Shown here one piece after another: positions 8,801-26,896 of a stretch of 64,000 nt of DNA. Every line of letters begins with the position of its first letter. Positions within the stretch are counted from its first letter, which is position 1. The DNA is from Guillardia theta CCMP2712 (lineage: Eukaryota > Protista > Cryptophyta), in NCBI RefSeq assembly GCF_000315625.1, contig NW_005434666.1:605877-669876 (forward strand). The letters run 5' to 3'. The translations under genes were made by a program, and so were the position numbers. The notes under the pieces were generated by a model that had not been told where the DNA came from, made no database searches, and saw nothing but the letters and a program-made list of their open reading frames with translations.

Positions 8801-11800
8801 TTGTGAAGAACATGAAGGAGGGAGTCAAGAATGAACCACCTAGATACATTCATTCGGCTGAGTCAGATGATAGTGTGTTGCTATCTGATGTGGACAGTCC
8901 CCGTAAGGTTAAGCAACCAGTCTACCTGAGTGAAATCATTTGACTTGTGCATGAACAGGAAGCGTATACGATATTATCGTCTGAGAGAAGCTCTAGAAGT
9001 GAAAAACATCCTGCCATGGTCTGTTCTTTCAGCTCCTTCTTTGTGTGAGTCGAATTCTGCAGGTTCCCCAACCCAATCCCAACGTTGTTCTGCACCCACC
9101 AAAGGATCGTATCAGAGAACCGAAACTCAATCGAGAAAATTCACGCCCCGAGTTGCAGATGCAGGAGGACTTGAAACAGCCGCAGGTATTTCTCCTCGAG
9201 ATACTGTGCTTCCTATTGACCATGGGTTAGCCTCCTCAAGCTCCCTCACAGAAAATCTCAGCAGCTGAAAGAAGAGCTGCGAATCTTGAGCGAGCGAAGA
9301 AGTTGGAGGAAGAAAGGAAGAAGGCTATCATATCCAAGAGAGAGGATCAAGATGACAGGAAGGCCAAGAAACTCCCGAATGTCCTTACCAAGGACGAGGT
9401 CCTCTCACAGGAACTCCTACAGCGATCGAATCACCTAGTTCAACTCATACCCGGTGTTGCAGGTAGCGAAGAAGGAGAAGAAGAGCCTGGTACCCGGCCG
9501 GCCATCATCGGTCCTAAGGGGAAGGGGAGGACGGGATAGCAGAAGCAGCATGTCGGACGGAAACAGCGATGATGACCGCATGTCTCTTCCTCCTCCTGAA
9601 GGACCATTACAGAGGCTCATGCGGTGATGCAACTCAGAGGAGGCCTCTCGGGGTCTGATAGGATGTCGCAATGCAGGCCGACGAGCCCCAAGACGAAGAA
9701 GAGGGAAGCCGAGATCGCAGAGATCAAGCGAAAACGAGAGATGCGGCTGCAGATGCAGAAGGAGCAGGCGGAGATGGTGGGTGGCTGTTTGCTAGGCTCC
9801 TGCTGGCTCCTGAGATGATGGTTGCAGGCGCGTGCGAGAGAGAGGGAGCTGTTTTTGAAAGCTCGGATGGAGGTTGAGCAAAGGATGGCTGTGCTGAAGA
9901 AAGCCCGAGGCGAACTCTTACCCTCGGAATCTTTTCTGGACGAAGAACGAGGCGAGGGCTCATTCATGGATGATTCTCCTACAAGGGAATCGAATACGGC
10001 GCCGAGATTCAACTTGCGCGAGCACGCAAAGCATTTCACTTCCAAGTAGACCATGAGGAGGAGGAGCGGGGGGAGGAGGAGCTGACGCGTTGACAGTTCT
10101 CGTTTCGATTTGGAGAGACATGTCTTCATGTGGAAAAATGAACCGAGAAGGTGAGGAATCTAAGGAATCAAGATCGGGGATGAACTTTATGGTCATTCCA
10201 GGCGGGAAACGGTTCAAACCGTGTTAAGGATTCTCGAGGAGATCTTCGTCGAAGTCACCACCGATCGATCGGAAAGCTCATTAGCCCTGCCTCGCAAGGG
10301 CGTTCGTTTGAGGAGAAATGGGGAAGAAATGGGCAGCAGGCAGAGTGATGGGCAAGGTGAATGTCGATTGATGAAGTCTCTTGTACATAACAACCATGGC
10401 ATCTAGAAAATTCTTCGCACAGATTACACCGAGAAGACTCTAGCACGTCAAGAAACAGAGACTCGTCGAGCTTTGACAACGTCAGCAAGAGCAAAGACGC
10501 TGGGGATCTGAAATACTGACATTGGTGCAGTTTGACAAGTACTTGCTATCAAAATCCAGCATGACGAACGACGAGCAGTTGAAGAAAATGTACCGCCGGC
10601 AGGCAAGTCCTCCATGTCAACTAGGAACTTCTTATTGTAGAACCCCAGGCATACCTCAGGAGGAAACTTTCCAAGTACAGGTAGTTTCCCCATTCACGTC
10701 CTCGCCATTCTTGACTTCATCTCAGGGAAGAGAAGGCACTGCAGGAAGCCCAAAGGCTGCGAGATGAGGCTGTGATCAAGAAGGCGATGGAGCAGGTCCT
10801 TGTAGTCGCCATGGAATCGCCCTTTCCTGATTGTGGGAATGAACAGGAGAAACGAAGGCAGCGAGAAAATGAAGCTCAGAGGAGAGCCAAGGTGGGGGGA
10901 TTCGGAGTCTACGATGATGTGCTACTGACTGATCTCTTTCCTTGCAGCTCAAGGAGAAAATCGCCGCCTACAAGCAGAAACTGGAGGAGGAAAGAAAGGA
11001 GGTGTGCATGAATCGTTTGGAAGCGATGAAGATTGACCCGAAGACTTCTTGTTACAACAGAAGAGTCTGGAGGAGAAGAAGAAGGAGAACGTCTCCAGGG
11101 AGGAACATCGGGATAGAATCCAGAAGGCAAGGGCTTCACGTGCTCAGGGCCATGGCTGCTGATCCGATTTCTCAGTACTTGAGAAGCAAGAAGAGTGGAA
11201 ACGACCTCAAAGGGAATCCCAAGGGCGATGATCGGGGCGTGCAACACGCCAGGCAGGAGTCGGCCTCGAAGCAGAGGAGCGCGCGGAGGTGAGACAGTTC
11301 TCTGACTCGCGAGACTACTGACGAGTCTGTCAGGGATGTGGAAGTCGTGGACCTCTTGAACACTGACTTCATCCCTGAGCCCACAAATCTCGGTGCGGCC
11401 CAGGCTTGTGCTACTTTCAGGGTGACTGCCGATACAGGATTGATCGGCCCCAAGACTCAACTTCCCGAGCACAACGGGGGGGGATCAGAGCAGGGAAAGC
11501 TTGAGCCTGAGGATGCTTCTGCAGACCCCCCAGCTGAAAGCCAAGAGGCCGATCCCCCAGCAGAAAGCCAGGAGGCCGATCCCCCAGCTGAAAGCCAGGA
11601 GGCCGATCCTCCAGCTGGAAAACAGGAGGCCGATCCTCAAGCTGAAAGCCAGGAGGCCGATCCCCCAGCTGAAAGCCAGGAGGCCGATCCCCCAGCTGAA
11701 AGCCAGGAGGCCGATCCCCCAGCTGAAAGCCAGGAGGCCGATCCCCCAGCTGAAAGCCAGGAGGCCGATCCCCCAGCTGAAAGCCAGGAGGCCGATCCCC

Positions 11801-12105
11801 CAGCTGAAAGCCAGGAGGCCGATCCTCCAGCTGAAAGCCAGGAGGCCGATCCCTCAGCTGGAGACCCAGCGGACCCTTCAGCTGAAAACCAGGAAGCGGT
11901 TCACGAAGAGTCGTCCGAGACGACAGGAGATGCTGGTGCAGCGGACGAGGGAGAGGCTGTAGAGAAGAAGCCCGCCGGACAAGAGCAGGTTTGAGGTCGG
12001 AGGGGGGAGACTGGACGGAGAGCTGATTGTTTCTGGAAGGGGATTCTCTCGCCGAACGGGAAGGAAGAGAAGTGGGAGGTTGAGGACGAGGAGCCTCAGG
12101 GGTGA
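5893..12105 (+). CDS. Large multi-exon protein: N-terminal calponin-homology-like domain, helical/ARM-like middle, coiled coils, C-terminal acidic tandem repeat (could be two genes)
   Basis: Chain of + strand exon ORFs (5893-6981, 6969-7499, 7423-8064, 8225-8554, 8569-8943 ... 11338-11994) separated by short GT-AG introns. N-terminal VFEWLEKIG...RLYVWNILSSLL...LIIAGD...LLLEI resembles a CH domain. Last exon ends at TGA 12103-12105. Confidence 0.55.
11521..11844 (+). repeat. Coding minisatellite, 12 x 27 bp (ADPPAESQE)
   Basis: Unit gccgatcccccagctgaaagccaggag repeated 12 times, followed by degenerate copies to about 11895. Confidence 0.95.
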
Positions 12106-15363: not shown

Positions 15364-16357
15364 CTATTTTGTTATGAGAGAGTATTTTCCGCAAACGTCC
15401 TTTGGCTGCGGAAGATCAGCAAAATTACTGAGAGGAAGCGGTAAGACATCTAGTGTACCATATCTGCTCGCACACTGAATGGTAACATCCACCTTGTCTT
15501 CAACCCCGTCAACTATCGCAAACACCTGAGGGGTGAAACCAAATGATCTCATGGATGAAAGTGAGGGAGAGAATTACAATGCCGAAGACCACCAACTGGA
15601 ACAACACTGGTCAAGACAGAGCTCAACAGAAGCGCATCTGCATCACCGAGTTCTGCCTCCTCACGGCCACCAGCTCTCCGACTTGCAACTCACCAGGCTT
15701 GCTCCATCTCACATAGCTGTACATCTCTCCTGAGAGCGGAACTCCACATAGGCTTCGTATCTCAGAGTCCGTGAACATCAACTTCCTGGCCTCCTCTCCG
15801 CCTCTTTCAACGTCTTCGCCCTCCTTCCTAAGATCTTTCTGAGCCCCAGTGATCTCTGCTGCGATCTGCATTGCCTCAGCATTCTTGGCCTGCATGTCAA
15901 GCAACGTGGAGAGGTCCTTTGGGTCCTCTTGGTCCTTCAGTGTCAGCCACACTCCTGTCCATTGTGCCCCGCAGTCATTTGCAATGTGCAGCATGGAGTT
16001 CATCTTGTTGCGCATCCCCTCCACCAGTCTCTCTTTCTCTCGCAGCTCTTCCTCCAGCCTCTGCACTCTCATCTTGAGCTCTCCTTCTCTCTCTATCGAC
16101 TGAGCAATCAAAGCTTGCTCCACGGTGCTTCCAGCACCCTGCCCAGTGCTCCGTGTAGCAGCCGCACCGTGCGCAACGCTATCAACAAGTACTGTGTTGC
16201 CTCTACCAGTCCCTTCCCGAGGCCTCCGCGGCTGCCTCTCCCTTTTCTGCAAGGTCTCTTCCTCTTCCTTGGCATCCCTCTTCATGACCGACCAACTTGT
16301 GAGCCTGTTTGCGGCCACAGTGATCGGAGCCCGCCCTTGCTCGTCTCCTGCCTTCAT
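15364..16357 (-). CDS. Hypothetical coiled-coil protein; its 5' part is duplicated at 19849-20087
   Basis: ORFs 15623-16357 and 15364-15552 with a coiled coil (LKMRVQRLEEELREKERLVE). Confidence 0.5.
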
Positions 16358-16374
16358 CTCAGTCTGTCACAGAG
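16106..16374 (+). repeat. Direct repeat A, left copy (269 bp)
   Basis: aatcaaagcttgctccacgg...tctgtcacagag recurs at 19849-20087. Confidence 0.95.
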
Positions 16375-16459
16375 ATCCTTCCACATATTCCACATACATT
16401 GTATATATGGAGCCCTTTCTTTTACTTAAAGTTGAGTAAACTTTCTTAGTTAAGTAACC

Positions 16460-16540
16460 GTTATTTTATCTTATAAAAGGACTTTTTAAACAGTATTCTC
16501 TGTTTTTCAGTTATTTTATCTTATAAAAGGACTTTTTAAA
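16460..16540 (+). repeat. Two copies of a 31-bp AT-rich unit, 50 bp apart, just upstream of the CRN-like ORF
   Basis: gttattttatcttataaaaggactttttaaa at 16460 and 16510; each contains TATAAAA. Confidence 0.9.
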
Positions 16541-16551
16541 AGTAGTGCTGC

Positions 16552-18744
16552 ATGGGCAGGCTCCTGCCTGCTTCCTACGTGCCAGTACATGCCATGTGTA
16601 GCTTGCTTGTCATCTGCGCATGCTTCAACGGTGTGGCAAGCATGCAGTTCTCTGATAGGGGGAAGCTAGACGGAAACTTCTACGGGTCCGTCGGGTTTGC
16701 TCGATCTTTGACACCTCCGAAATGTTTGAGGGGAGGATTCCAAACGAGCTCTGCACAAAATTTGCTGGAGGCCCTTGAGAGGAGCATGCCAAATATCGGT
16801 AATGATCGAGAATGCCTCACGTTGCGCGGAGGAGCTGAGAGCTCGAGGGGGATACAGAAAGAGATCAAAAGGGTAGAGACAGAGATCAAAAGTGTAGATA
16901 AACAGATCCACGGGGTAGAGACAGAGATCAAGGGGGTAGAGACAGAGATCAAGCTGATAGGGGATGAGATCAAGAGTGTAGGTCTACAGGATCCGAGGAG
17001 ACATTCCGATCTTCGTAAAGAAAAGAAGCAGCTTCGTAAGAAAGAGGCCCAGCTTCGTAAAGAAAAGAAGCAGCTTCGTAATGAAAAGAAGCAGCTTCGT
17101 AAAGAAAAGAAGCAGCTTCGACAGCTTCTTCAATTGAAAGAGGAGTACCGTCCAAAAAGTCGTTTCTCGGGAGAAAGAATTGCTTGGACAGAGTCAGATG
17201 CTGGGCTTGATCGCATGGGCTTTTGCCATGACAACAAGTACTTCCGTCTAGATAGCAGGTACTTGAGCATAGTCGCAGATGCGGACAGCCAACACGAGCA
17301 ACTGCTCTATTGCCGAGAAGCCTTCTTGAAGCAGCATATTTTCCTGAGAGAGCGTGTGCTTGAACGAGGTGCCCTGGGGTGGATACAGGGCTCGCCAGGA
17401 ACAGGGAAGACGACGGCGACGTTATCCTTTTCGTTGATGCTAGACATGAACGATTGGAGTGTGACAATCATCAGGCTGAAAGCTGTACTAAACGCTCTTT
17501 GTGTTCAGGTTGTAGGTAGTATGCGACGAACGTGCGTGATCGACAAGGGAGCTGTCAAAGAAATAGTGGAGAAGTTGCTCAGAGAATGGTCCGACGGCAA
17601 GAGGCGTCTTGTTGTACTGGATGGGTTCTTAAGACACGAACAGGATCATTTGGGAGCCTTTATTGCATGCAATAAATGGCGGGACATGGACAGAAGCAAT
17701 CGACGGTTGGTGGTGGTGACCTCAATGGCTTCTAGAGGGAAAACCTACTACGAGGAGGATAGGGACATGAAACTGGAGGAGCACCTCGTCGTCTCTTGGA
17801 CAATGCATGAATACTTGGAGGCAGTGCAGTCAGATGAGTTCTACGAGAAAGTCGAAGGCGTGTTGGAGATGGATCTGGATTCGCTTTCTCCGAGGCTAAG
17901 AGAATGGGGTATCGAGATGACGCAGACAGCTAGCTCGAAAGAAGCACGGGTCAGGCAGAAGCATTACCTCGCTGGTGGTTCATGTCGGTACATGTTCGAA
18001 ATGACCGCAGATACGGTGCTTGAAGTGATTGATAGAGCGTTACTAAGTTCCCCAGATTTAGAGCTTATCTTTCGGGGTAGTATAGGCCCTTCTTCGATGC
18101 AGATAGTCAATCGCCTGATAGCAACTTTCAAGATTGACGGTGTTGTGAGCTGGTTGCCAGTGAGCATGTATGTTTCCTGGAGGCTTATGCTCCAGGTTGA
18201 AGAAGAGGAGTTGACGAGGATTTGCTCGAAATTTGGCACACGAAGTGCGGCAGTGAAGGGAACCTTATTCGAGTTGATGTTTTTCAAGGAGGTGCAACGG
18301 GGCTTGAGATTGACTTACCGCAGAAAACGTAGCAGACCAATTAAGGCTCGGCCTTGGGAAAGTCGTAGCATAGTGTTCTTTGATCCGCTGCAACTCAAGA
18401 TTTCTCTCCCTACCACTTCGGTGTGCTTCAGACCGATCAGCGAGCTTCAAGGAGGATACGATGCTGTGATTGTAGACAAGGATGCCAAAAGGGCAGTGTT
18501 TGTGCAGGTAACCGTGGCCGAGAAGCACAGTCTGAAGCTTTCTTTCTTCTTGGATACTCTCAGGGCCCTCGGGATTCCTGCAGGTCTTGTATGGAAGGTC
18601 GAGATCATCTTCCTCATTCCACGAGAGAGGATGCCGGTGTTCCGGATAAGTCCTGTCGAAGACTGCGGGGCGTTGGAGACATATGGATGGAAGAAAGGCG
18701 AGGAAAGGAAGCAGGCGAAGGTTGCGTGCCTAACTTTAAATTGA
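16552..18744 (+). CDS. Crinkler/RHS-type (CR) effector-like protein: signal-peptide-like leader, two LRGG motifs, heptad coiled coil, P-loop NTPase, C-terminal restriction-endonuclease-fold domain; intronless
   Basis: Hydrophobic MCSLLVICACFNGVAS; KCLRGG and TLRGG; Walker A GSPGTGKT; Walker B LVVLDG; AGGSCRYMF; GTLFELMFF; GGYDAV...VFVQVTVAEKHSLK (D...QxT nuclease-like motif). Confidence 0.8.
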   Translation: MGRLLPASYVPVHAMCSLLVICACFNGVASMQFSDRGKLDGNFYGSVGFARSLTPPKCLRGGFQTSSAQNLLEALERSMPNIGNDRECLTLRGGAESSRGIQKEIKRVETEIKSVDKQIHGVETEIKGVETEIKLIGDEIKSVGLQDPRRHSDLRKEKKQLRKKEAQLRKEKKQLRNEKKQLRKEKKQLRQLLQLKEEYRPKSRFSGERIAWTESDAGLDRMGFCHDNKYFRLDSRYLSIVADADSQHEQLLYCREAFLKQHIFLRERVLERGALGWIQGSPGTGKTTATLSFSLMLDMNDWSVTIIRLKAVLNALCVQVVGSMRRTCVIDKGAVKEIVEKLLREWSDGKRRLVVLDGFLRHEQDHLGAFIACNKWRDMDRSNRRLVVVTSMASRGKTYYEEDRDMKLEEHLVVSWTMHEYLEAVQSDEFYEKVEGVLEMDLDSLSPRLREWGIEMTQTASSKEARVRQKHYLAGGSCRYMFEMTADTVLEVIDRALLSSPDLELIFRGSIGPSSMQIVNRLIATFKIDGVVSWLPVSMYVSWRLMLQVEEEELTRICSKFGTRSAAVKGTLFELMFFKEVQRGLRLTYRRKRSRPIKARPWESRSIVFFDPLQLKISLPTTSVCFRPISELQGGYDAVIVDKDAKRAVFVQVTVAEKHSLKLSFFLDTLRALGIPAGLVWKVEIIFLIPRERMPVFRISPVEDCGALETYGWKKGEERKQAKVACLTLN
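16861..17119 (+). repeat. Two blocks of 21-bp coding repeats (EIKxVET about 6 times; LRKEKKQ about 5 times)
   Basis: gagatcaa-ggggtagagaca-like units at 16861-16983; cttcgtaaagaaaagaagcag-like units at 17011-17119. Confidence 0.9.
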
Positions 18745-19380
18745 GAATGAATCAAAGCAAAGCAAAGCTCCCATATTTCAATCATACAAACACAGTGATA
18801 CTAGTCGATACATGAGAATATTGAACAAGATCTTCTGACAGGTAGGATGAGCTGGTCAAAACTCAAATTATCCTTCTCTTTATATGACTAAACCAAAGGT
18901 TTTCTTGTCAATCCTTCTCAGCTTTCCTGTGCTGCTCCATGCAGCCTCATAAGAATGCAGGAGTGTTGGGGGAAGGTGATGATCAATCTTAGAAATGACT
19001 GCTAGCGAGGTGATCAATTTGATGGACAGAGAGCCTTGGCAAGTATATCTAGCGATTTGCGAGATCAGTGAATATTGAAAATAAGGAGTTTTGTTTTTTT
19101 TGTTTGCAATACGGAGCTCAGTTGTTCTTTCCCATTTGTTCTCTGTTTCCCTCGTTCTCCAATCCCCGTCCCCGGCATTCCCCCTTCTCTTCTCCTGGTC
19201 ATACACCGTTTCCCAACAATCTGTACTATGATCATTCTCTCGGTTAGCTGAATAACCTGTGTTTTGTTCTTACATCGCTGTAATCATTAGCTTCGTCATA
19301 TTCCTTCTGTGTTGGCTGTTTCCCGGCTCTGCCTTATGCTTACTTTGTCTCCTTCGGGCCAGTACAAGCAGTCGTTTGGT

Positions 19381-19449
19381 AGCTCTGCACAAACTTTGCT
19401 GGAGGCCCCTGAGAGGAGCAATCTTGGCAAAGAAAAGGAGCAGCTTCGT
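19381..19449 (+). pseudogene. Degenerate, internally deleted fragment of the CRN-like gene
   Basis: agctctgcacaaactttgctggaggcccctgagaggagca (matches about 16747-16787) fused to atcttggcaaagaaaaggagcagcttcgtaagaaagagg (matches about 17009-17048). Confidence 0.75.
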
Positions 19450-19564
19450 AAGAAAGAGGAGAATCAGGATGCAGTGTGGTGTATGGGGACCCTGGCTTTC
19501 ATCGTTTGCGTGCTTGCCTGTTTCGGCAGTCACTGAGTATCGCTCTCGCATGGGTCTTGTCCTC

Positions 19565-19808
19565 CTGCGCATGCTTCAACGGTGTGGCAAGCATGCAGTT
19601 CTCTGATAGGGGGAAGCTAGACGGAAACTTCTACGGGTCCGTCGGGTTTGCTCGATCTTTGACACCTCCGAAATGTTTGAGGGGAGGATTCCAAACGAGC
19701 TCTGCACAAAATTTGCTGGAGGCCCTTGAGAGGAGCATGCCAAATATCGGTAATGATCGAGAATGCCTCACGTTGCGCGGAGGAGCTGAGAGCTCGAGGG
19801 AATCGTAA
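19565..19808 (+). pseudogene. 236-bp duplicate of the CRN-like leader (16614-16849), stopping just after the second LRGG
   Basis: 19565-19800 appears identical by eye to 16614-16849; the frame ends ...TLRGGAESSRES*. Confidence 0.9.
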
Positions 19809-19848
19809 TGCATATGGGTGATAGAGCAGCCCGATCCAGATCTAAGAT

Positions 19849-20087
19849 AATCAAAGCTTGCTCCACGGTGCTTCAAGCACCCTGCCCAGTGCTCCGTGTA
19901 GCAGCCGCACCGTGCAACGCTATCAACAAGTACTGTGTAGGCCTCCGCGGCTGCCTCTCCCTTTTCTGCAAGGTCTCTTCCTCTTCCTTGGCATCCCTCT
20001 TCATGACCGACCAACTTGTGAGCCTGTTTGCGGCCACAGTGATCGGAGCCCGCCCTTGCTCGTCTCCTGCCTTCATCTGTCACAGAG
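19849..20087 (+). repeat. Direct repeat A', right copy (239 bp, degenerate)
   Basis: Same sequence as 16106-16374 with deletions of 2, 22 and 6 nt. Confidence 0.95.
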
Positions 20088-21433
20088 TCATGTCTTGAGA
20101 AAGTCAAATCACCGGCATACTATCTTTTTAAAAGTTAAGTCAAAAATCAGTACGAGGACAATCAGGAGAGAGAAAAGACAGAGCACAAACACCTATACGA
20201 ACACCTGCTGTCACCCAAACTTAACTGATACCTTCACTTAACTACGCGCTTGACCATTCACCCGCCCGGGCCGATGCCGGGTCGGAAGGCCCGGACTAGG
20301 TATCGGATGCCAACTGAGCTATGCAAAATTTCCATGTAAGTTACCACCTCCTCGCACAATGACAATATGGTAATTTAAAGGGCATGTAGTACCCTACCTA
20401 GTCCAGCGGTTACAGTTCATTTACCCACCAATACTTGCCTGTGAGCTCCATGGTCAAAAGTAGGGGTAATTCGAGCAACACATGGTGAACAGTCTCATTT
20501 GTAGGGTAGGGTACTGGTTCCCCTAAGAGCTCTGTTGCGAACTACCCCCACCACCAGAGCATATTTGTTGTTCCACCCACCCCTTAAATCAACATGAGTG
20601 TAGCCTGCAGCATACCAATATCACCACCCACCAGATTCAAAGAGTTTTTTTCGGGTTAAGAACACCCGTGTTGATACAACCCTACCCTCAAATAAATCAC
20701 TCCTTGAAGGAAGTACCCACCCTAATGTTCCATGACCACTCCTCTAACCCTACGATTCTCAGGACCAAAACATCCCTCGAATGACCCTACCATTGAAATC
20801 GAAATCCTTGACCTACCCCTACCCCCCTCATTTCAGTGCGGTGTTTCTGCACCCCAGGACTTCGGACACCACCCATCTGAATGACGAGGGTCCCCACCTC
20901 CTTCATGTGCAGACCCCAGAAAGTCCCCTAATCACCACACAATGAATACCCACCCTACCTCTTGTGCAGCGTAATTTTATAACCCCTACCCACAATCCCT
21001 GTAATTGCCTCAATTGAGGACCCCATCTTACTCACCCCTACCCTAGCCCTGCTTGTCACCAGGGTCCTGCTCCTCCTCTCCTACTACCACCAAACCTCCG
21101 CCTCCTCCTCCCCTCCTCCCTCCTCCCTCCTCCCTCCTCACCCATCTCCCTCCTCCTCACCCCTCCCCGCTTTACTCCTTCGAGTCTTCAGACGGTTTGA
21201 GAGCTCTATAGATCACCTATCTTGGTGGATCGCACCTCTCCTCGTATACTAGTTCCTCGATCGCTCTTACTGCTGTCAAAAGCTTTGTTTGTTCTCCTGC
21301 GTCGAGGAGGTAAAAACTTATCAGTATATATTGCGGAGGATTGGGCATCCGTCCCCTGCAGACTTCTGCCAAACTGTACACCAAGTCGAGTTTACTGGAC
21401 GCTTGTGCTGGTTCCCTTTAGCTCAGCAAGGAG

Positions 21434-26794: not shown

Positions 26795-26896
26795 ACTTAA
26801 CTTTGAGTAAAAGTTTTAACTTAACTGTCCGGCCGGGGCTGATGTCTGGGCCCCTCCGGACCATCATCCTCAGGCACGGTTTACTCAAAGTTAAGT
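26795..26896. repeat. 17-bp perfect inverted repeat with a 68-bp spacer
   Basis: acttaactttgagtaaa (26795-26811) and tttactcaaagttaagt (26880-26896). Confidence 0.9.

Follow-up and report, generated by a model that had tools for sequence, protein, structure and literature searches.

An intact Crinkler-type NTPase-nuclease gene in Guillardia theta and the probable recent patchwork duplication beside it

The genome of the cryptophyte alga Guillardia theta CCMP2712 (87 Mb, 669 contigs) contains, on contig C8, an intronless gene that is flanked by copies of DNA from its own 5' side. We analysed a 64-kb window around it (C8:605877-669876; positions below are those of the window), which contains no Ns and in which no tRNA was found. 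The gene is a 730-codon open reading frame (ORF) whose product is homologous to the C-terminal module of the Crinkler (CRN) proteins of oomycetes, and the copied DNA downstream of it probably records a single recent rearrangement of complex type. An original prediction had instead seen in this arrangement a cassette of a nucleoside triphosphatase (NTPase) and a nuclease that may have inserted or duplicated itself. The genes and domains concerned are as follows.

15623..16357, minus strand: first exon of N, the gene next to the ORF (GUITHDRAFT_101757, encoding a 421-residue tetratricopeptide-repeat (TPR) protein), with its start codon at 16357 and 99% agreement with the annotated product
16552..18744, plus strand: intact intronless ORF, open for 730 codons; hydrophobic N-terminus, two LRGG motifs, heptad repeats, and a CRN-type module of NTPase, helical and restriction-endonuclease (REase) parts
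17389..17628, plus strand: P-loop NTPase core, from Walker A GSPGTGKT (residues 280-287) to Walker B LVVLDG (residues 353-358)
18214..18741, plus strand: C-terminal REase-fold domain with conserved E574, D637, Q652-x-T654, H659 and K662

The CRN-type module of the ORF covers residues 228-718, approximately. Pfam gave weak P-loop matches only (AAA_11, 1.2e-6) together with coiled-coil noise, and a sequence search against solved structures returned no match. A word search with the ORF recovered G. theta paralogues and P0012, a protein with a genuine Crinkler header (PF20147, 8e-22), whose relatives are named CRN proteins of Phytophthora, Peronospora, Pythium, Aphanomyces, Lagenidium and Thraustotheca, plus one from a chytrid. 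By BLASTP, the ORF matched the Phytophthora infestans T30-4 CRN protein P0029 at 4e-60, with 33% identity over residues 228-718. The comparison of the NTPase-nuclease region with CRN profiles that the original prediction had proposed gave a clear answer: hhalign of the G. theta family profile against a profile of 15 CRN proteins from oomycetes and a chytrid yielded a probability of 100 and an E-value of 1e-114 over 511 columns, the match running from just past the HVLVxxP motif through to the C-terminus.

AlphaFold2 models built from paralogue alignments were confident, with values of the predicted local distance difference test (pLDDT) of 84 for residues 215-730 and 85 for residues 555-730. 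In Foldseek searches, the model of the NTPase domain matched P-loop NTPases of AAA+, STAND and helicase type (clamp loaders, Apaf-1, CED-4, Avs5) with E-values of about 1e-5 to 1e-6, and VIA gave Z-scores of 10-11.6. The transposition ATPases MuB and TnsC are among these many AAA+ structure matches, which could speak for a gene that moves itself; they are not favoured, however, over helicases, clamp loaders and STAND NTPases. Searched alone with Foldseek, the C-terminal domain had no significant match, and the weak list was enriched for PD-(D/E)xK nucleases. The same class made up most of the top 50 rows in VIA-align at modest Z-scores, the best being SdaI (5.7) and McrC (5.6), with N.BspD6I, Bse634I, FokI, Cfr10I, NucS and Hjc also present. 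In the third catalytic motif Q652-V-T654 replaces the canonical (D/E)xK and K662 lies on the next helix, while E574 and D637 are conserved. The aligned oomycete CRN proteins likewise have Q-x-T in place of (D/E)xK (VQVT..KHS).

These data support the conclusion that the ORF encodes a P-loop NTPase joined to an REase-fold domain, homologous throughout to the C-terminal module of named Phytophthora Crinklers; the fold assignments of the original prediction are thus borne out by both CRN homology and structure matches. By analogy with CRN proteins, the product would be a nucleotide-regulated enzyme that targets nucleic acids.

Its N-terminal part, or header, is of another kind. It has a hydrophobic stretch at residues 10-30, two LRGG motifs and 21-nt periodic repeats, which form two runs within 16849-17141 and encode heptads of the EIKxVxx and KKQLRKE types; the copy number of these heptads varies among paralogues. 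The hydrophobic stretch is the only secretion-related feature that we observed in the protein. According to Pfam, the Crinkler header PF20147 (LxLFLAK/HVLVxxP) is absent from the ORF and from all annotated G. theta relatives. A whole-genome scan for PF20147 also gave no match, with the control silent too, and it therefore carries no statement on genome-wide absence.

The ORF belongs to a sizeable family. At least 64 six-frame matches were found in the genome, of which some 45 approach full length and nearly all are free of stops; they cluster on contigs C84, C17, C193, C19, C13 and C28, mostly in tandem. In an alignment of 26 paralogue sequences, most Walker A and B positions were invariant or at least 90% conserved. 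The ratio of nonsynonymous to synonymous divergence (dN/dS) between the ORF and its paralogues was 0.3-0.5, indicating relaxed but real constraint and hence a maintained gene, and dS to the nearest paralogue was 0.35. The exact 730-residue sequence occurs in none of the public protein sets searched, where the best match was a paralogue with 68% identity; this copy of the gene thus appears to be unannotated in G. theta. A literature search pairing Guillardia with Crinkler found nothing.

Several relatives are accompanied by pieces of themselves. The two closest paralogues, L002 (C13:893867-899044) and L003 (C13:907337-912493), lie about 11 kb from one another in inverted orientation and are nearly identical duplicates (dS 0.011). 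Each has an inverted 176-nt partial copy of its own coding region (98-99% identity) some 590 nt past the stop codon. Within about 1 kb of L014 (on C193) lies an upstream 378-nt partial self-copy (98%), L024 (on C174) has one of 162 nt (96%) just downstream, and L012 (on C147) has complex inverted partial self-copies of high identity within about 1 kb. The frequency of such self-copies was compared with the rest of the 64-kb window only, too small a control to set a background. The growth of the family is mainly a matter of tandem duplication and decay, which has left truncated copies around several members.

On its upstream side the ORF adjoins gene N, with which it forms a divergent pair around a common 194-nt promoter. 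The first-exon ORF of N spans 244 residues (99% identity to the annotated protein), and its later exons can be traced in minus-strand ORFs as far as about 14700. Because N is a real multi-exon gene, the contrast drawn in the original prediction between an intronless ORF, which is indeed open throughout, and an intron-rich setting holds. Hanusia phi has an orthologue of N with 69% identity. A 90% identical counterpart of exon 1, P0062, is encoded by a 2670-nt ENA genomic contig from a close relative; a metagenome scan revealed no relatives of N.

The repeats around the ORF involve both genes of the pair. They comprise two pairs of copies, A/A' and B/B', and a short filler.

16106..16374, no strand assigned: repeat A, the first 252 nt of the N coding sequence together with the 17 nt that precede the ATG
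16614..16849, plus strand: repeat B, ORF codons 22-99, the source of B'
19565..19800, plus strand: repeat B', identical to B at 236 of 236 positions and lacking an in-frame ATG
19801..19848, no strand assigned: 48-nt filler between B' and A', for which neither a window match (14 nt or more) nor a genome match was found
19849..20087, no strand assigned: repeat A', a truncated and frame-broken copy of the 5' end of N, with deletions of 2, 22 and 6 nt and one substitution

The two same-orientation copies of the 5' part of the neighbour, reported in the original prediction, were found again with exactly those three deletions. Apart from them, A and A' differ by one substitution in the 239 remaining positions. 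A' is a dead fragment, since its 22-nt deletion breaks the frame, and no further A-like sequence occurs in the genome. A/A' and B/B' are the only non-tandem repeats of at least 60 nt in the whole window, so A/A' is not a chance match. Elsewhere in the window, in an unrelated part, lies a tandem array with units of about 54 nt (11521-11897, 83-90% identity between units).

The gene had been described as bracketed by a direct repeat. A/A' is real, but that description missed the second pair and with it the order of the pieces along the DNA, which is A, promoter, B, rest of the gene, 3' flank, B', filler, A'. This order is no simple bracket: the downstream block is a permuted mosaic. Read as one block, B' and A' reproduce the 744-nt A-promoter-B segment in circularly permuted order but without its middle 233-240 nt (16375 to about 16610), which hold the promoter and the start of the ORF. 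The mosaic is non-coding, sits 0.8-1.3 kb downstream of the gene and has no second copy as a unit in the genome. Back-splicing, or a circular RNA, was considered as the source of the B'-A' junction and rejected, the block boundaries having no GT/AG.

With divergences of about 0-0.4% for A/A' and B/B', as against a dS of 0.35 between the gene and its nearest paralogue, the gene copy itself is about 100 times older than the repeats.

Tandem duplication offers one route to such copies. A 3.74-kb unit starting at 16106 could have been doubled by unequal crossing-over, as in other parts of the family, and the second unit then mostly deleted, B' having arisen separately. The distance from A to A' (3743 nt) equals one unit of A, promoter, gene and 3' flank, and tandem arrays with truncated copies are the rule in this family. 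Three recent events would nevertheless be needed, namely the making of B', the duplication and a deletion that begins exactly where A' ends. Moreover, B' is 100% identical to B and is placed before A' in permuted order, and no DNA homologous to the promoter or the gene follows A'. We regard this origin as unlikely.

The same copies might also have been put in place by the assembly, through a chimeric clone or mis-joined Sanger reads. The perfect identity of B and B', the repetitive family and the absence of the ORF from public annotation could all be read in that way. The window, however, has no Ns, and no alternative contig carries the sequence; each copy has unique flanks and is short enough to fit within one Sanger read, and the three private deletions and the substitution of A' are not expected of a mis-join. 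An artefact is thus quite improbable.

The DNA around the copies is itself composed of pieces.

16404..16458, plus strand: TE-1 fragment of 55 nt, carrying TTACTTAAAGTTGAGT at 16422-16437, from a dispersed repeat of at least 1.6 kb
16460..16540, plus strand: two identical 31-nt copies 50 nt apart, directly upstream of the ORF ATG
18745..19150, plus strand: 3' flank of the gene, 77-84% shared with a truncated paralogue on contig C104
19340..19470, plus strand: collapsed, degenerate N-terminal piece of a family member, with signal-peptide-like, SSAQ-motif and K-rich coil bits
19478..19566, plus strand: internal fragment (89 nt) of a dispersed repeat whose parent is at least 570 nt long, with more than 25 copies scored
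20123..20250, plus strand: complete element resembling a miniature inverted-repeat transposable element (MITE), whose left terminal repeat carries AAAGTTAAGT at 20131

In the piece at 19340-19470, the signal-peptide-like, SSAQ and K-rich bits are contiguous, whereas they are dispersed in intact genes. At the junction between the repeat fragment at 19478-19566 and B' there is a short homeologous stretch, CTTGTC.TC.TGCGC. The fragment at 16404-16458, placed in the 194-nt shared promoter, is 100% identical to four other loci; there about 30 nt separate it from the end of the surrounding repeat, which is at least 1.6 kb long (loci of the parent repeat: L033-L039). The fragment was not found upstream of the other 29 paralogues. 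A Crypton was considered as its parent; no Pfam match was obtained in the available 1.6 kb of the parent repeat.

Two of these pieces account for a motif, AAAGTTRAGT, that had been reported to follow each repeat copy. It does follow both, and in the window it occurs four times against 0.18 expected, but the first occurrence is at 16428 and not at 16421, with spacings of 54 nt past A and, for the one at 20131, 44 nt past A'. The occurrence at 20131 lies in the element at 20123-20250, which is about 130 nt long and has imperfect terminal inverted repeats of about 27-33 nt. Its consensus terminal 33-mer, CTTTACTCAAAGTTAAGTYAAAAATCAGTACGA, had 994 genome matches at three mismatches or fewer, the reversed control having none, and several of the listed sites pair in inverted orientation 65-125 nt apart. 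The family of this element therefore has the traits by which MITEs are recognised: it is short and non-coding, with terminal inverted repeats and high copy number. The occurrence at 16428, by contrast, belongs to the 55-nt fragment of a different dispersed repeat. Since the two motif copies are in direct orientation and come from different repeats, they do not mark the termini of a single element. Elsewhere in the window a pair of terminal repeats faces each other at 26795-26810 (minus) and 26881-26896 (plus). Among the paralogues, a solo MITE-like terminal repeat precedes the start codons of L002 and L003 by about 10 nt, and the terminal repeat lies at most 700 nt upstream of three others.

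Since the mosaic lies between the transposon-derived pieces 19478-19566 and 20123-20250, capture of gene fragments by a transposon of Pack-MITE or Helitron-like type, with the B and A pieces landing downstream, deserves a hearing, and CRN genes in Phytophthora are found in Helitron-rich regions (PMC5289972). At the present locus, though, the flanking pieces come from different repeat families and have no inverted termini; the left piece is an internal fragment and not an end, and the mosaic is single-copy. Such a capture seems to us very doubtful.

Self-insertion by the cassette makes a prediction of its own, that other members of the family should have flanking duplications as well; the original prediction counted their absence as evidence against itself. 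At 29 paralogue loci, self-comparison revealed no locus-specific flanking direct repeats. The flanking repeats seen there were the next units of tandem arrays, plus a few partial self-copies. DNA homology between the present gene and its closest paralogues (80%) extends over 16566-18814 only, with no shared termini. No inverted pair brackets the cassette, and it has neither terminal inverted repeats nor long terminal repeats, as the original prediction had itself observed.

What favours an NTPase-nuclease cassette that inserted or duplicated itself and left a long flanking target duplication is that the gene does lie between direct copies of A, that a prokaryotic transposon origin has been proposed for the NTPase-REase pair (PMC5289972), and the MuB and TnsC matches described above, which are no better than those to other NTPases. 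A duplication of target type does not predict the copy of the gene's own 5' coding part that lies between the gene and the second repeat, joined to A'. The permuted position of A', the age of the repeats relative to the gene copy, the lack of duplications and common termini among paralogues, and the membership of the motif in an unrelated MITE-like family all tell against insertion or duplication driven by the nuclease. We consider it extremely unlikely. As the repeat is a patchwork duplication, the locus gives no evidence for a self-mobilising nuclease cassette.

The arrangement is better accounted for by an intact member of the Crinkler-type family that came to stand beside a very recent mosaic, the product of one complex repair, template-switch or small-circle event; this is the account that we think probable. 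A single recent event is suggested by the permuted order, the equal, near-zero divergence of both pairs, the filler, the homeology at the junction and the neighbouring foreign fragments. It would have started with a break downstream of the gene. Nearby templates could then have supplied short pieces through template switching or fragment capture; alternatively, a small circle of the A-B segment could have been opened in the promoter and reinserted. We count the partial self-copies near L002 and L003, L012, L014 and L024 as a recurrence that supports this account.

Several points weigh on the other side. The mechanism would have to be read from the anatomy of the locus, and neither the 48-nt filler nor the three deletions in A' have an identified template. 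The mosaic could be multi-step, the piece at 19340-19470 being clearly older than B'. A and A' are each followed, 44-54 nt on and in the same orientation, by a related transposon motif, which we attribute to the high density of elements and do not regard as fully explained. As for the protein, its nuclease activity is putative; Q-x-T stands in place of the canonical (D/E)xK, as it does in the aligned oomycete CRN proteins.

The self-copies also admit a more far-reaching idea: breaks and small DNA circles may be provoked by family members, or drawn to them, where these genes lie, and partial, sometimes permuted, self-copies would then build up beside them, both here and near the paralogues just named. 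We give it little credence. If true, the family would be rearranged and amplified locally through its own product or sequence context, with no need of transposon ends, and the recurrence of partial self-copies near family members is in any case a question worth genome-wide attention.

The supposed footprint of mobility is, on the account preferred here, an ordinary if neat case of patchwork duplication. The family is of interest in its own right. The C-terminal NTPase-REase module of CRN proteins, for which oomycetes that cause plant disease are the best-known source, forms a large, maintained and intronless family in a cryptophyte alga, and its presence behind a different header in a free-living alga bears on the roles of Crinklers outside pathogens.

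Compared with oomycete CRN proteins, the ORF is homologous in its C-terminal module over about 510 residues and has in common with them Walker A and B, a GGSCRYMF block, QGGYDA, VQVT..KHS and a W.KG.E tail. The two differ at the N-terminus, where CRN proteins have a ubiquitin-like LxLFLAK/HVLVxxP header and the ORF has a hydrophobic leader, LRGG motifs and a heptad coil. They differ also in their bearers, G. theta being a free-living phototroph with a family of at least 64 copies. We know of no delivery of G. theta family proteins into another cell.

A teleost Crinkler-like gene, AACRNL, has been reported to have spread with flanking hAT/mariner elements (PMC12957317). Like the gene studied here, it is of Crinkler type, multi-copy, present in a non-pathogen and adjacent to transposon sequence. 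AACRNL, however, encodes an ADP-ribosyltransferase domain and is enclosed by the inverted termini of a single transposon, whereas the pieces flanking the G. theta gene are unrelated fragments in direct orientation, common to no other copy. The complete element at 20123-20250 resembles known MITEs in its length of about 130 nt, its terminal inverted repeats and the roughly 1000 copies of its terminal 33-mer.

For the mosaic, the nearest parallels are complex templated insertions and template-switch rearrangements at DNA breaks, of the type described as microhomology-mediated break-induced replication (MMBIR) or fork stalling and template switching (FoSTeS), and the reinsertion of small extrachromosomal circles. 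The G. theta event differs from these in being known from its sequence anatomy, with some junctions lacking an identifiable donor. It resembles template-switch products in its short pieces (50-250 nt), its nearby and dispersed donors, the permuted order, the filler and the homeology at the junction.

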